A stretch of 64,000 nt of DNA from Calcarisporiella thermophila CBS 279.70 (lineage: Eukaryota; Fungi; Calcarisporiellomycota), in contig NW_027192213.1 of the NCBI RefSeq assembly GCF_041956535.1, positions 366,444-430,443 on the forward strand, written 5' to 3'. The position numbers and the translations under genes were made by a program. The notes under the pieces were generated by a model that searched no databases, was not told the DNA's origin, and worked only from the letters and a program-made list of their open reading frames with translations. Below are positions 45,209-47,752 of this stretch, piece after piece; the stretch's first letter is position 1, and each line of letters opens with the position of its first letter.

Positions 45209-45237
45209 CGATACCTCGCATTTATTTCCCCACGATT
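45209..45237. repeat. 29-bp exact direct repeat (other copy 46509-46537)
   Basis: CGATACCTCGCATTTATTTCCCCACGATT occurs at both positions with unrelated flanks. Confidence 0.92.
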
Positions 45238-45355: not shown

Positions 45356-46852
45356 TCATGGAGCTCGTAGTACAAGACACCGTTCAAATCCTTGACCGTC
45401 CTTTACTACTCCTTCGTGTTTCCAGTTCTCAAACACCGCCTTTACAGCATCCATCGCTCCTTTTGCACACTCTAATGCAAGGAGCCCACCCTTCTTCAAT
45501 AGACTAGTGCACATTAGTCCATTGTGTATTGCTTTGTAATATTCGAGCCCGTCTCGCGAATTTGTGAAAAGACCCAACTCAGGTTCATAGACACTAGCTA
45601 AATCAAGTCGAGACCGCTGCTGTGGTGAGAGATATGGAGGATTGCACACTATAGCATCGAACGGCCCCTCGCTCAAAAGTCCCTCCTCATGTGAAAGTCG
45701 AGTAAAATCTGCGAGAAGGAATTTGGATCGATCCTCCAAGTGAAGACGCTGTCGATTTTTTTCCGCTATACTTAATGCGTCCGGACTGATATCGACTCCA
45801 ACACCGAATGAAAGAGGTAGAGAAGCCAATATGGATAGCAGGATGCATCCGCTCCCTGTGCCCAAATCCAGTATTTTGATGCTTGATTCGACTGTAAAAT
45901 TGTCAAGGGTTGCCTGCACAAGTGTCTCGGTACTTGGACGCGGTATGATGGTTGCAGGAGAAACGATGAAGGGGTGCCGAAAGAAGTATTGTTCACCAAT
46001 TCGATAGGCAACCGGCATTCTCTCCTCTATTTCCCCTCTCTCTTCTATGCCTTGCTTGTCAAGGCCTTCTCTCTGATAATATTCTTCTAATATTCGCTCG
46101 TCTTCTTCTCGCTTCTTTCCGAAAAAATGAGCTTCTCTAGTCCGTATTCCCTCAAATTTTGCCGGCTCCTCCCCCTTTATCCTTATTTCTTCATTTGTCA
46201 CCGGGTGGTGAAACCAAATTTCTATCAGCGAGAGACAGAGGCCCTTGTTCTTGTTGCTTTTCAACGGCTTCGTATGAGAAGATTGGCCAGCAATAGGGTT
46301 GGATGTTTTAAAGAAATAGCGCCGGAGAGGAGCATTACCTGCTGGTTGCGAAGTGACAATATCGAGAGTAGAGAGTGTTCCTGCAGACGTACTTGGGGAA
46401 TATTTAATAAGCTCACAAGCAGTTATTATGGAGGATTCTTCTATCGAGCTGTCTAATGCTACATTTATGCTATCTTCATGTGTGGCAACACGTCCATGGC
46501 AAAGAGCACGATACCTCGCATTTATTTCCCCACGATTGAGCATCGCGGTAAGAGTCTTTTTCATCTCTAGGGATTTTGATACTACTAAATAGCCAGAGCA
46601 AGCCTTTCCAACATGATATATGCAATGAAGGGTAAGTGGCGTCGTTTCGGTATCGGCAGAGAAGAGATAAGGGAGATAATGTGTGAGTGCGTGAGGTGTA
46701 ATCCCAGGGCCTTTCCATAGGACGGCAAGATGTGAGTCCTGGAAAGTAACATGAACATTGAGTGAAGGGGGCTTTTTTTTCTTCTCACTTTTGACTTTGG
46801 TGCTGTAGACGGGTGCGTTCGAAGGGGGTGGCAATGTGCCTTCTTGGGCCAT
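45356..46852 (-). CDS. Fusion: degenerate RluA-type pseudouridine-synthase-like domain + HemK/PrmC N5-glutamine methyltransferase; single exon
   Basis: C-terminal half: 'PVAYRIG', 'IPRPSTETLV', 'ILDLGTGSGCI', 'GVDIS', 'NPPY'. N-terminal half follows RluA motif order: 'VTFQDSHLAVLWKGPG', 'YHVGKACSGYLVVSK', 'YRALCHG', 'NPIAG', 'FHHPVTNE'. Confidence 0.85.
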   Translation of the reverse strand: MAQEGTLPPPSNAPVYSTKVKSEKKKKPPSLNVHVTFQDSHLAVLWKGPGITPHALTHYLPYLFSADTETTPLTLHCIYHVGKACSGYLVVSKSLEMKKTLTAMLNRGEINARYRALCHGRVATHEDSINVALDSSIEESSIITACELIKYSPSTSAGTLSTLDIVTSQPAGNAPLRRYFFKTSNPIAGQSSHTKPLKSNKNKGLCLSLIEIWFHHPVTNEEIRIKGEEPAKFEGIRTREAHFFGKKREEDERILEEYYQREGLDKQGIEERGEIEERMPVAYRIGEQYFFRHPFIVSPATIIPRPSTETLVQATLDNFTVESSIKILDLGTGSGCILLSILASLPLSFGVGVDISPDALSIAEKNRQRLHLEDRSKFLLADFTRLSHEEGLLSEGPFDAIVCNPPYLSPQQRSRLDLASVYEPELGLFTNSRDGLEYYKAIHNGLMCTSLLKKGGLLALECAKGAMDAVKAVFENWKHEGVVKDGQGFERCLVLRAP

Positions 46853-46976: not shown

Positions 46977-47752
46977 ATGCCGATCACATTTTTAAGGTCT
47001 CCCGAAGAATCTACTTCCTCGGTTCGACATCACCAAGCTGCAGTTCGTGCAATTATAACACCTCTGTCCATTCTTACCCAGCAGCTGTCCGGTTCCGATA
47101 TTCCTTCAGAACTCGGAAAGGGAGATCTTGTCGTCCGCGAAGATAAACTTTATTTCTTTTCCTCTCAAACATCCGTGGGCTTTTCGATTGATTATCCGTC
47201 CATAATTATTCACGCTGTATCGCGTACCTTTGAGGGTGGACAGTGCATATACTGCCAGCTGGATGTAAATGAGGGCGAGGAAGGAGAGGAGCAACCAGTG
47301 GAGCTGCGTTTTGTGCCAGACGATCTGGGATCTTGTATGTTTTTTCTTTTTGTTTTTTCGTAGCTTGGGATTTTCGTAGTGCTGCTACCTATATTAACAC
47401 TCTGATCTTGAACGCGGTGATTATAGTGGATGCGATCTATATGGCACTCTGCGATTGCGCCGCTTTACATCCTTCCAAAGAAAGCGAGCATACAAATGGA
47501 GGTTTCTATGACGACGACGACTACGAAAATTATGATGACGAAGATAATGAATTTTTCACGGTCGCCCCAAGCGATGAAGCAGAGTTGAGTGAGGTTGGGA
47601 GGGCAGCCCTGGCGCACCTAGACTCGATTATTTCGGGACCCATCCCGGAACAAAGCCAGGAAACTGGAGATCAGAACGATATCGACATGGAAAACACAGA
47701 CTATGATCAATTTAGAGATGCGGATGAGAATCAAGATCGACAAACAAGATAG
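46977..47752 (+). CDS. ICln/CLNS1A (Voldacs/Lot5) methylosome subunit, 2 exons
   Basis: 'GKGDLVV', 'GFSIDYPSIIIHAVSR', 'CIYCQL', 'ELRFVPDD', 'VDAIYMALCDCAALHP'; acidic tail with 'QFRDADE'. Confidence 0.88.

Follow-up and report, generated by a model that had tools for sequence, protein, structure and literature searches.

A degenerate pseudouridine-synthase fold joined to a predicted PrmC-type methyltransferase in Calcarisporiella thermophila and other early-diverging fungi

Two homologs of PrmC have been described in eukaryotes, the mitochondrial HEMK1/Mtq1 and the cytosolic HEMK2/Mtq2 (PMC8904536). Bacterial PrmC/HemK (E. coli PrmC, PDB 2B3T/1T43; T. maritima HemK, 1NV8) is recognized by its fold, a LIPRPxTE hairpin, the motifs D-x-G-T-G-x-G and NPPY and a small residue preceding NPPY; such a residue (Ser/Gly type) marks PrmC and HEMK1, whereas HemK2/Mtq2 has Phe in its place (PMC8904536). 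RluD and RluC are S4-containing 23S rRNA pseudouridine synthases, and in E. coli K-12 a single RF2 variant ameliorates the defects of rluD inactivation as well as those of prmC inactivation (PMC5373646). In kinetoplastid mitoribosome assembly an inactive pseudouridine synthase, mt-LAF4, acts as a placeholder and was seen on the particle by cryo-EM, and mt-LAF3, an RluD homolog with a conserved active site, is bound on an intermediate of large-subunit assembly (PMC7703582). Fusions of related domains exist in bacteria: in PrmC/TrmB (NF002421) PrmC is joined to an RNA-modification enzyme, the partner being TrmB and not a synthase, and in proteins with PseudoU_synth_2 and Methyltrans_SAM (PF10672) an RluA-type synthase is joined to an RlmI-type RNA methyltransferase of the m5C family and not to PrmC. 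Both halves of these bacterial fusions are presumably active. The ESM Atlas held no cluster of the family described below, only PF00849+PF10672 fusions of bacteria scoring about 0.8, which are analogous and not kin and, at such scores, no more than a lead.

The window, which is the whole stretch of 64,000 nucleotides of Calcarisporiella thermophila CBS 279.70 that was analysed, contains at 45356-46852 on the minus strand a single unbroken open reading frame of 498 aa with an ATG start. A sequence-only reading of this DNA had proposed one 498-aa gene at this place, and both its coordinates and its start codon were verified. The AlphaFold2 model of the protein has a pLDDT of 86 and a pTM of 0.77. 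An exhaustive profile search for proteins carrying both domains, reduced to representatives at 50% identity, yielded at least 103 two-domain members, so that the halves are joined in relatives as well and are not separate genes there. The features of the C. thermophila gene, with counts over the 103 family rows, are as follows.

45356-46852, minus strand: complete coding sequence, 498 aa, with the stop codon (45356-45358) included; a member lacking S4 of the fusion family [quoted passage not shown]
46772-46852, minus strand: N-terminal tail, aa 1-27, disordered and Lys-rich (pLDDT <50 for residues 1-27), in the place occupied by S4 in most relatives
46163-46771, minus strand: RluA-family (RluC/RluD-type) pseudouridine-synthase fold, catalytically degenerate, aa 28-230 (VIA Z 19-21; Foldseek; TIGR00005)
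46589-46618, minus strand: YHVGKACSGY, aa 79-88, counterpart of motif II (HRLDxxTSGL), from the profile alignment to E. coli RluD and column counts
46283-46330, minus strand: degenerate motif III region, aa 175-190, with Arg177 and Gly189 retained (family column counts)
46028-46162, minus strand: linker helices, aa 231-275 (model helix 231-262; VIA ranges; family conservation)
45359-46027, minus strand: PrmC/HemK beta-hairpin and Rossmann-fold methyltransferase, aa 276-498 (profile, sequence and structure matches)
45848-45868, minus strand: SAM-binding motif I, DLGTGSG, aa 329-335 (D329, G331 and G333 each in 98% of the family)
45632-45643, minus strand: NPPY, substrate-amide binding and catalytic motif, aa 404-407 (100% of the 103 family rows)

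The frame is closed by a TAA 9 nt before the ATG, and a divergent ICln gene has its own ATG only 124 bp away on the upstream side. The S4 domain is thus absent from the encoded protein, and the idea that it resides in an upstream exon was rejected on the same grounds. The ICln gene itself is apparently split across two open reading frames. A scan for sigma-70 promoters and terminators gave counts at chance level, the model being bacterial and irrelevant to a eukaryotic host.

Every named member of the family belongs to a fungus outside the Dikarya. The hosts comprise chytrids, Blastocladiomycota, Neocallimastigomycota and zygomycete lineages, including Mucor, Rhizopus and Phycomyces, and 43 of the 103 members form one clade without any named species, from environmental eukaryotes. 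By sequence searches the family has so far been found only in early-diverging fungi and in these unnamed eukaryotes. A word search with the N-terminal half of the Piromyces protein P0015 recovered only Neocallimastigomycota and two stand-alone synthases, and is of low sensitivity and uninformative on distribution. In a literature search no paper describing the S4/pseudo-synthase/PrmC architecture was found, and as judged from the sequences the family is apparently undescribed and would be a third branch of PrmC homologs in eukaryotes beside the two known.

The C-terminal half had been read as an intact HemK domain with GTGSG and NPPY, and the motifs, the hemK_fam model TIGR00536 (138.1 bits, above the cut-off of 115.5, aa 275-491) and the structure agree on this. 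E. coli PrmC (2b3t) matches the protein with an E value of 1.8e-20 and 31% identity by sequence, and superposes on the AlphaFold2 model with Z 28.9 and an rmsd of 2.6 over 248 of its 276 residues. Since TIGR03534 (PrmC) scores 175.7 bits against 113.5 for TIGR03533, and the residue before NPPY (Cys403 here; C 90, S 7, T 4, G 1 and F 1 in the family) is small in 102 of the 103 rows, the domain is predicted to be a SAM-dependent N5-glutamine methyltransferase of the PrmC/HemK1 type and not HemK2 or PrmB. The hairpin specific to PrmC is conserved as well (Y283, F290, F295, IPR303-305, E309). For HemK2/Mtq2 (TIGR00537) the genome yielded a single candidate, weak and split, at C5:231557-231706.

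Compared with bacterial PrmC, the protein is eukaryotic, stays below the TIGR03534 equivalog cut-off of 199.1 and carries a synthase fold of 200 aa in front. The suggestion that the N-terminal helical domain of HemK is largely missing stood only in part. PF17827 (PrmC_N) has no sequence match in the protein at E up to 1 and the TIGR03534 alignment starts at model position 40, but residues 240-285 of the AlphaFold2 model overlay PrmC from residue 12, and ESM Atlas clusters bearing PrmC_N are overlaid by the model from its residue 241. In the predicted structure the five-helix domain appears to be reduced to a helical remnant, not absent. The linker segment superposes on the C-terminal helix of RluD as well as on part of this PrmC domain, and its signature residues P230, K232, F233 and E240 are conserved in 86-97% of the family.

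In RNA, adenine N6 and guanine N2 are further known targets of NPPY enzymes. The pocket might therefore have been re-used for an exocyclic base amino group (m6A or m2G) in rRNA or tRNA, presented by the dead synthase, and this is the alternative that survives best. The N-terminal fold is that of a family of enzymes which modify RNA, S4 domains bind RNA, and the protein-recognition domain of PrmC is reduced, with no PF17827 match. Moreover, the bifunctional PrmC/TrmB model NF002421 (90.9 bits on this protein) indicates that PrmC can fuse with RNA-modification enzymes, and NPPY-type RNA methyltransferases are structurally near to the domain, with Z 19-21 for the tRNA and rRNA enzymes (TrmM, 7wm6, Z 21.1; RsmC; RlmG), TrmN and METTL16 likewise being close neighbours. 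We nevertheless consider a base as substrate unlikely. The RNA methyltransferase models score 35 bits or less against the 175.7 and 138.1 bits of the PrmC and HemK models, Z is about 21 against 28.9 for PrmC, and the domain keeps the hairpin typical of PrmC as well as a small residue in front of NPPY. In addition, the methyltransferase domain carries a negative or no net charge in 77% of rows, as in bacterial PrmC, which by this crude heuristic speaks for a mostly acidic domain.

If the enzyme is of the PrmC type, it could simply be a second, ordinary isoform of Mtq1 whose substrates are the GGQ factors of mitochondria, with the dead synthase as a mere scaffold or regulatory appendage that has no role in targeting. 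PrmC is the best family match, and in the tree the fusion domain lies near alphaproteobacterial PrmC, where a gene of mitochondrial descent would be expected. Such an enzyme has several substrates at hand, since four GGQ proteins of the mitochondrion are methylated by HEMK1 in mammals (PMC8904536). Fungi have both the fusion and Mtq1/HEMK1, and the two agree in enzyme type and in the small residue that precedes NPPY. However, a separate canonical Mtq1 paralog of 303 aa (L001; TIGR03534 196.4 bits, just under 199.1), for which the sequence-only reading had proposed a search, is present in the same genome, and many fungi with the fusion likewise encode a canonical Mtq1 of about 300 aa with a presequence-like N-terminus. 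The fusion proteins have about 200-300 extra N-terminal residues and mostly start directly with S4 and are acidic early, the first acidic residue standing at a median of position 5 against 22 in Mtq1. The C. thermophila protein has Glu as its fourth residue and lacks Arg within its first 25 aa, which by this heuristic check bears out the earlier impression that no obvious mitochondrial presequence is present. Its N-terminus is, from its sequence, not presequence-like, and the protein therefore probably acts outside the mitochondrial matrix. Moreover, the S4 and synthase-like domains have been kept over a long time across chytrids and zygomycetes, which argues that the function of the appendage is selected. 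A second Mtq1 isoform thus seems quite unlikely.

The phylogeny separates the two groups in the same way, with support of 100/100 for the fusion clade and 99/91 for the Mtq1 clade. Together with the lack of a characterising paper in the literature searched, this speaks against the fusion being an already known Mtq1. Placing the fusion and Mtq1 alone in one group was rejected by the AU test (p-AU 5e-9), and with it a recent duplication of Mtq1 within the fungi as the origin of the fusion. One group formed by the fusion, Mtq1 and PrmC of the Dependentiae type was not rejected (p 0.16), so an ancient duplication, or a shared ancestry that includes the Dependentiae-type PrmC, may lie behind the family.

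The N-terminal half was not recognized above cut-off by the sequence models, PF00849 giving 22.8 bits (cut-off 26.8) and TIGR00005 rluA_subfam 40.8 bits with an E value of 1.6e-10 (cut-off 192.7). Its assignment to an RluA-type fold, already made from the letters alone, is upheld by structure: residues about 25-254 of the AlphaFold2 model match RluD with Z 20.7, RluC with Z 20.4 (rmsd 2.6, 194 aligned) and RluA with Z 19.1 (VIA), and Foldseek matches this half to the pseudouridine-synthase fold with an E value of about 1e-11. The family profile of this half matches full-length E. coli RluD, S4 included, at 1.2e-25, and neither this alignment nor the Z scores separate an affinity to RluC from one to RluD. 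As with RluD and RluC, most relatives have S4 followed by the synthase fold; the differences are the replaced Asp (Gly here, variable in the family), the loss of S4 in C. thermophila and the fusion to a methyltransferase.

The catalytic Asp is the one residue universally required in pseudouridine synthases. In the profile alignment the family pattern L-E-K-A-x-x-G-L lies on HRLDKDTTGL of RluD, where the C. thermophila protein reads YHVGKACSGY, and Gly82 (codon 46607-46609) takes the position of the Asp, the same codon as in the sequence-only reading, which had also pointed to YHVG in place of HRLD and to a degenerate GRTHQIR. No D or E occurs at any position of aa 76-92. In the degenerate motif III region the column of Arg177 holds R in 74 rows and K in another 12 of the 103, and 96 rows retain Gly189. 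As judged by these alignments, the N-terminal half is a non-catalytic RluC/RluD-like fold that has lost the catalytic Asp and the HR of HRLD and has a degenerate motif III.

This state is not a peculiarity of the C. thermophila gene. None of the 103 family rows has HRLD, and the catalytic-Asp column reads E in 33, D in 22, G in 10, Q in 8, P in 6 and A in 5, with others in the remainder; only one of the 22 rows with Asp also has the motif II Arg, the motif IIa Tyr and the motif III Arg. NPPY, P304, N366 and P424 are, by contrast, 100% conserved. According to the aligned sequences, then, the canonical RluA active site has been lost throughout the family while the methyltransferase motifs are strictly conserved, and the dead synthase fold is a family-wide and ancient state. 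That this half is still a working, atypical synthase in a truly bifunctional protein might be argued from the Asp and Glu in the catalytic column, from the mostly kept Arg177 and from three relatives (P0003, Piromyces P0015 and P0036) that pass the PF00849 (PseudoU_synth_2) cut-off, yet it is very improbable given a freely varying Asp column, Asp without the other active-site residues, a Gly with no acidic residue nearby in C. thermophila and, elsewhere in its genome, three or more further PF00849 loci that exceed the cut-off. It is equally hard to credit that the gene is in decay, or an error of annotation or assembly, and has no function in C. thermophila, for the lost S4, Gly427 (Ala in 98% of the family), Ala463 (Gly in 82%) and the long branch of 1.1 are set against an intact 498-aa frame with every SAM and NPPY motif residue, a confident AlphaFold2 model, branch lengths of 0.9-1.3 as usual in the family and an architecture recurring in at least 103 representatives.

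The N-terminal S4 RNA-binding domain is retained in 75 of the 103 rows, and in the Polychytrium relative it passes the Pfam gathering score; as far as the sequences tell, it has been lost in C. thermophila, where the first 30 aa carry a net charge of +4. The S4/N-terminal columns are positively charged in 72% of rows, a charge count being a crude heuristic, and the columns of the synthase-like fold are about neutral (median charge +1). The affinity of the C. thermophila protein for RNA may be weaker than that of its relatives, since S4 has been lost.

The reading that we prefer, with about even confidence, is that of an N5-glutamine methyltransferase docked on RNA or on the ribosome. Its dead synthase, together with S4 or, in C. 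thermophila, with the Lys-rich tail, would bind structured RNA, and the most plausible partner, as for RluD, would be the rRNA of the large subunit or a ribosomal particle. This docking would let the PrmC-type domain methylate the glutamine amide of a translation-associated protein, candidates being a release or rescue factor of the GGQ type or a ribosomal protein. That the dead fold may be an RNA-binding module retargeting the methyltransferase is suggested by S4 standing ahead of it in those 75 relatives and by the precedent of a dead synthase as a placeholder in ribosome assembly (PMC7703582). mt-LAF4 resembles the fungal fold in having lost catalytic residues and in persisting without enzymatic function, as a module associated with the ribosome; it is, however, stand-alone and related to tRNA synthases, whereas the fungal fold is RluC/D-like and fused to an active-looking enzyme, and its binding to the ribosome is only inferred. 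Helix 69 as the docking site is only a lead, because an RluD affinity is not separable from an RluC one. The link between rluD, prmC and RF2 in E. coli would give a functional logic to the pairing of a synthase with PrmC.

A more specific form of this proposal is put forward tentatively, as possible though somewhat doubtful. The family would then be a hitherto unrecognized class of RNA-guided protein methyltransferases, in which a fossil module resembling RluD, together with S4, anchors the enzyme to the rRNA of the large subunit close to where release factors bind. The PrmC-type domain, so placed, would methylate a glutamine in a ribosomal protein or in a factor bound to the ribosome, outside mitochondria. 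If this is true, the activities of rluD and prmC, linked in E. coli K-12 by the same RF2 variant, would here be physically joined, and eukaryotes would have a third, ribosome-coupled pathway of glutamine methylation that is lacking in Dikarya and animals.

To our knowledge very few targets of protein glutamine methylation have been described. A new dedicated enzyme would thus point to a new target or to a new targeting route, and the fusion family would stand as a third, conserved eukaryotic branch beside Mtq1 and Mtq2, with a different architecture. Several of its hosts (Mucor, Rhizopus and Phycomyces) are genetically tractable, so the function of the fusion can be tested directly. Moreover, the family appears to be a clear example from nature of a pseudo-enzyme domain that has persisted beside an active-looking one over hundreds of millions of years.

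The fusion gene of Calcarisporiella thermophila permanently joins a PrmC-type catalytic domain to a non-catalytic RluC/RluD-like fold. As the sequence-only reading had it, the gene is one uninterrupted ORF. The features of its locus, and the separate methyltransferase gene of the same genome, are as follows.

45356-46852, minus strand: fusion gene, single ORF of 498 aa
46977-47752, plus strand: ICln/Voldacs gene (PF03517, 57.4 bits), spread over two ORFs, 46977-47363 and 47333-47752
45209-45237 and 46509-46537: exact 29-bp direct repeat, CGATACCTCGCATTTATTTCCCCACGATT (plus strand)
L001:1489-2400, minus strand (G000:C5, about 823971-824882): canonical Mtq1-type enzyme, 303 aa

An in-frame stop, TAA, precedes the fusion-gene ATG by 9 nt, and the upstream neighbour is the divergent ICln/Voldacs gene on the opposite strand, the two ATGs being separated by a common intergenic region of 124 bp. 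The split of the latter gene over two ORFs implies a short intron. The fusion protein carries a disordered Lys-rich tail where most of its relatives have an S4 domain, and these gene boundaries (upstream stop, close ICln gene) show that the loss of S4 is real. One copy of the repeat falls within the fusion CDS (about aa 106-115) and the other ~120-150 nt past the stop codon; an exact match of this length greatly exceeds what chance would give in 1.8 kb. Nothing was flagged as resembling human DNA.

A confident AlphaFold2 model (mean pLDDT 86, pTM 0.77), for which 18 family members were aligned, confines disorder to residues 1-27 and 271-275 and places a long helix, 231-262, as a bridge between the two domains. 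Foldseek ranked PrmC/HemK first (2b3t, E 8.5e-19, rmsd 2.2), followed by the catalytic domains of RluC, RluD and RluA (E about 1e-11 to 1e-10), and also returned human RPUSD1 and RPUSD4. A second structure aligner gave Z 28.9 for E. coli PrmC over 248 of 276 residues (model 240-498 onto chain 12-276), 20.7 for RluD (model 25-254), 20.4 for RluC (rmsd 2.6) and 19.1 for RluA. Both predicted folds are thus confirmed, including the pseudouridine-synthase fold previously proposed for the N-terminal half. The helical N-terminal domain of HemK had been considered largely lacking, and PF17827 indeed has no sequence match in the protein; however, the linker helices overlay this domain of PrmC, so that in the model it appears reduced, not missing.

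A word search, confined like all the protein searches to referenced sequences, found about 35 full-length relatives (30-39% identity), all from early-diverging fungi. An exhaustive profile search over 1.84 billion representatives, with the new sequences then added to the family alignment, brought this to at least 103 rows with both domains. All recovered names are non-Dikarya fungi: Chytridiomycota (Chytridiales, Chytriomyces, Podochytrium, Rhizoclosmatium, Physocladia, Nowakowskiella, Polychytrium, and Entophlyctis with tandem paralogs), Blastocladiomycota (Paraphysoderma, Sorochytrium), Neocallimastigomycota, Zoopagomycota, Kickxellales, Harpellales and Entomophthorales (Syncephalis, Piptocephalis, Spiromyces, Coemansia, Zancudomyces, Massospora), and Basidiobolus, Mortierellaceae, Endogonales and Mucorales. 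In a fast tree this named part roughly tracks the fungal phylogeny, and Dikarya and animals are absent among the best 150 profile matches (listed down to about 233 bits). Of the representatives, 43 group in a clade without any named member; restriction to fungi thus holds for the named members recovered and is not established for the family as a whole. Members of that clade lie on eukaryotic contigs (L009, from ENA ERZ25071330; L010, from JGI 3300062272) and one in NCBI assembly GCA_006365155.1 (L011, VFQN01001330.1). L010 and L011 have the gene order aldo-keto reductase, DnaJ, Glyco_transf_92, fusion gene in common, at about 40% GC and with genes called as single ORFs. Adjacent fusion-gene paralogs occur in Entophlyctis luteolus and Entophlyctis sp. 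JEL0112 (proteins P0302, P0387-P0392) under consecutive locus tags (HDU82_004801/004802/004804, HDU83_000523/000524, HDU84_007890/007891); one record of 1203 aa may be two copies joined.

The C-terminal half exceeded the cut-off of hemK_fam TIGR00536 (138.1 bits against 115.5), stayed under that of PrmC TIGR03534 (175.7 against 199.1) and reached only 113.5 bits with PrmB TIGR03533. Its closest solved structures by sequence are the release-factor glutamine methyltransferases 4dzr and 2b3t (E about 1e-20). Constraint on this half is tight over the 103 rows, with N404, P405, P406, Y407, P304, N366 and P424 conserved at 100%, F290 and E461 at 99%, and D329, G331 and G333 at 98%. Judged by these matches the half is a HemK/PrmC methyltransferase, and its catalytic domain is PrmC-type with motifs intact, as claimed from the GTGSG and NPPY motifs. 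Two departures of the C. thermophila protein at otherwise well-conserved positions are Gly427 (window 45572-45574; Ala in 98% of rows, within EPxxALF) and Ala463 (window 45464-45466; Gly in 82%). All but one of the 103 rows have a small residue before NPPY (Cys in 90); this residue is small in PrmC, HEMK1 and Mtq1 and Phe in HEMK2/Mtq2 (PMC8904536). Next to this, a PrmC-derived RNA (m6A/m2G) methyltransferase is unlikely, though it survives best among the alternatives. Net charge is positive over the S4/N-terminal columns in 72% of rows; over the methyltransferase domain it is zero or below in 77%, which resembles bacterial PrmC (median -7.5). This split, heuristic and weak as evidence, fits a front part that binds RNA and a catalytic domain directed at protein.

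Somewhat less probable still is a redundant mitochondrial Mtq1 isoform. The separate MTQ1 that had been proposed as a check exists: the L001 protein (TIGR03534 196.4 bits), which shows 100% identity to a named C. thermophila record, has an N-terminal helical region and an Arg-rich start, MRIRRRFRSAV, so the fusion is an additional gene, not the only HemK1-type enzyme. Orthologs of the L001 protein occur in many fungi that also have the fusion, namely Jimgerdemannia, Basidiobolus, Dichotomocladium, Halteromyces, Piptocephalis, Coemansia, Podila and Spinellus. In fusion N-termini the first acidic residue comes at a median position of 5 and residues 1-25 include 3 acidic ones, versus position 22 and 1 in Mtq1; in the window protein Glu4 is already acidic, and Arg is absent from the first 25 residues. 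These heuristic hints argue against a classical matrix presequence, in agreement with the first impression. In a careful tree of methyltransferase domains (18 from fusions, 22 from fungal Mtq1, 18 from bacterial PrmC) support was 100/100 for the fusion clade and 99/91 for Mtq1, and no bootstrap tree united the two. Uniting them alone cost 82 log-likelihood units (p-AU 5e-9); a union including the Dependentiae-type PrmC rows adjoining Mtq1 was not rejected (p-AU 0.16), the bacterial rows being the nearest matches of each query and the tested group having been named after a quick tree. The split predates the divergence of chytrids and zygomycetes and would go back to either an ancient duplication within eukaryotes or a separate acquisition. 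PMC8904536 gives the number of PrmC homologs in eukaryotes as two. On a starred branch, the sister group of the fungal Mtq1 clade is PrmC of Dependentiae/Babeliales-type bacteria; this position hints at a transfer, in either direction, between these intracellular bacteria and eukaryotes.

The RluA-family signal of the N-terminal half is real but sub-threshold at the sequence level (PF00849 22.8 bits, cut-off 26.8; TIGR00005 E 1.6e-10). A profile built from the N-terminal halves of the family finds full-length E. coli RluD, with its S4 domain, at E 1.2e-25 and aligns 'ineLeKAtsGlvivAKt' with 'vHRLDKDTTGLMVVAKT'. At the HRLD site the window protein reads IYHVGKACSGYLV, which puts Gly82 (codon 46607-46609) at the catalytic Asp, as first proposed, and aa 76-92 contain no acidic residue. 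Over the 103 rows this column holds E 33, D 22, G 10, Q 8, P 6, A 5 and others; of the preceding HRLD residues, Arg is there in 18 rows and His in almost none. A still-active atypical synthase is very improbable, motif II Arg, motif IIa Tyr and motif III Arg occurring together in only one of the 22 Asp-bearing rows. Moreover, at least three other loci of the genome exceed the PF00849 cut-off, so that pseudouridylation does not depend on this domain. The fold itself is retained, with conserved glycines G50, G87, G120, G189 and G204, R or K in 86 of 103 rows at Arg177, a family-specific linker signature (P230, K232, F233, E240 at 86-97%) and S4 ahead of it in 75 rows (above the Pfam cut-off in Polychytrium). 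This pattern is the mark of a domain retained for binding, not catalysis. A decaying gene or artefact is likewise very improbable.

The preferred reading is a targeted PrmC-type enzyme. The target of RluD is helix 69 of the large subunit; the synthase-like half ties between RluD and RluC, which leaves the helix 69 idea only a lead. The dead fold, with S4 or a basic tail, would bind structured RNA or a ribosomal particle and supply the targeting that normally comes from the PrmC N-terminal domain, and the enzyme would then methylate the glutamine amide of a translation-associated protein. The RluD homolog mt-LAF3 was seen bound to an LSU assembly intermediate, and mt-LAF4, an inactive pseudouridine synthase, is a placeholder in LSU assembly (PMC7703582). 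In E. coli K-12 the RF2-B variant ameliorates defects from rluD or prmC inactivation (PMC5373646), and HEMK1 has four GGQ proteins as methylation substrates, among them an integral ribosomal protein (PMC8904536).

Members are named in databases 'S-adenosyl-L-methionine-dependent methyltransferase', 'HemK methyltransferase member 1' or 'Bifunctional methyltransferase', and the literature searched gave no description of the architecture. Bacterial ESM Atlas clusters (Bdellovibrionota, Verrucomicrobiota, Myxococcota) join PseudoU_synth_2 to a different methyltransferase family, PF10672 Methyltrans_SAM; they may be analogous, and are only a low-score lead. Both domains come from known families; what is new is that their combination is conserved, that one half is a pseudo-enzyme and that the family forms a third clade. 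Nothing so far points to a new chemistry, and the substrate is what specialists in translation and RNA modification would want identified.
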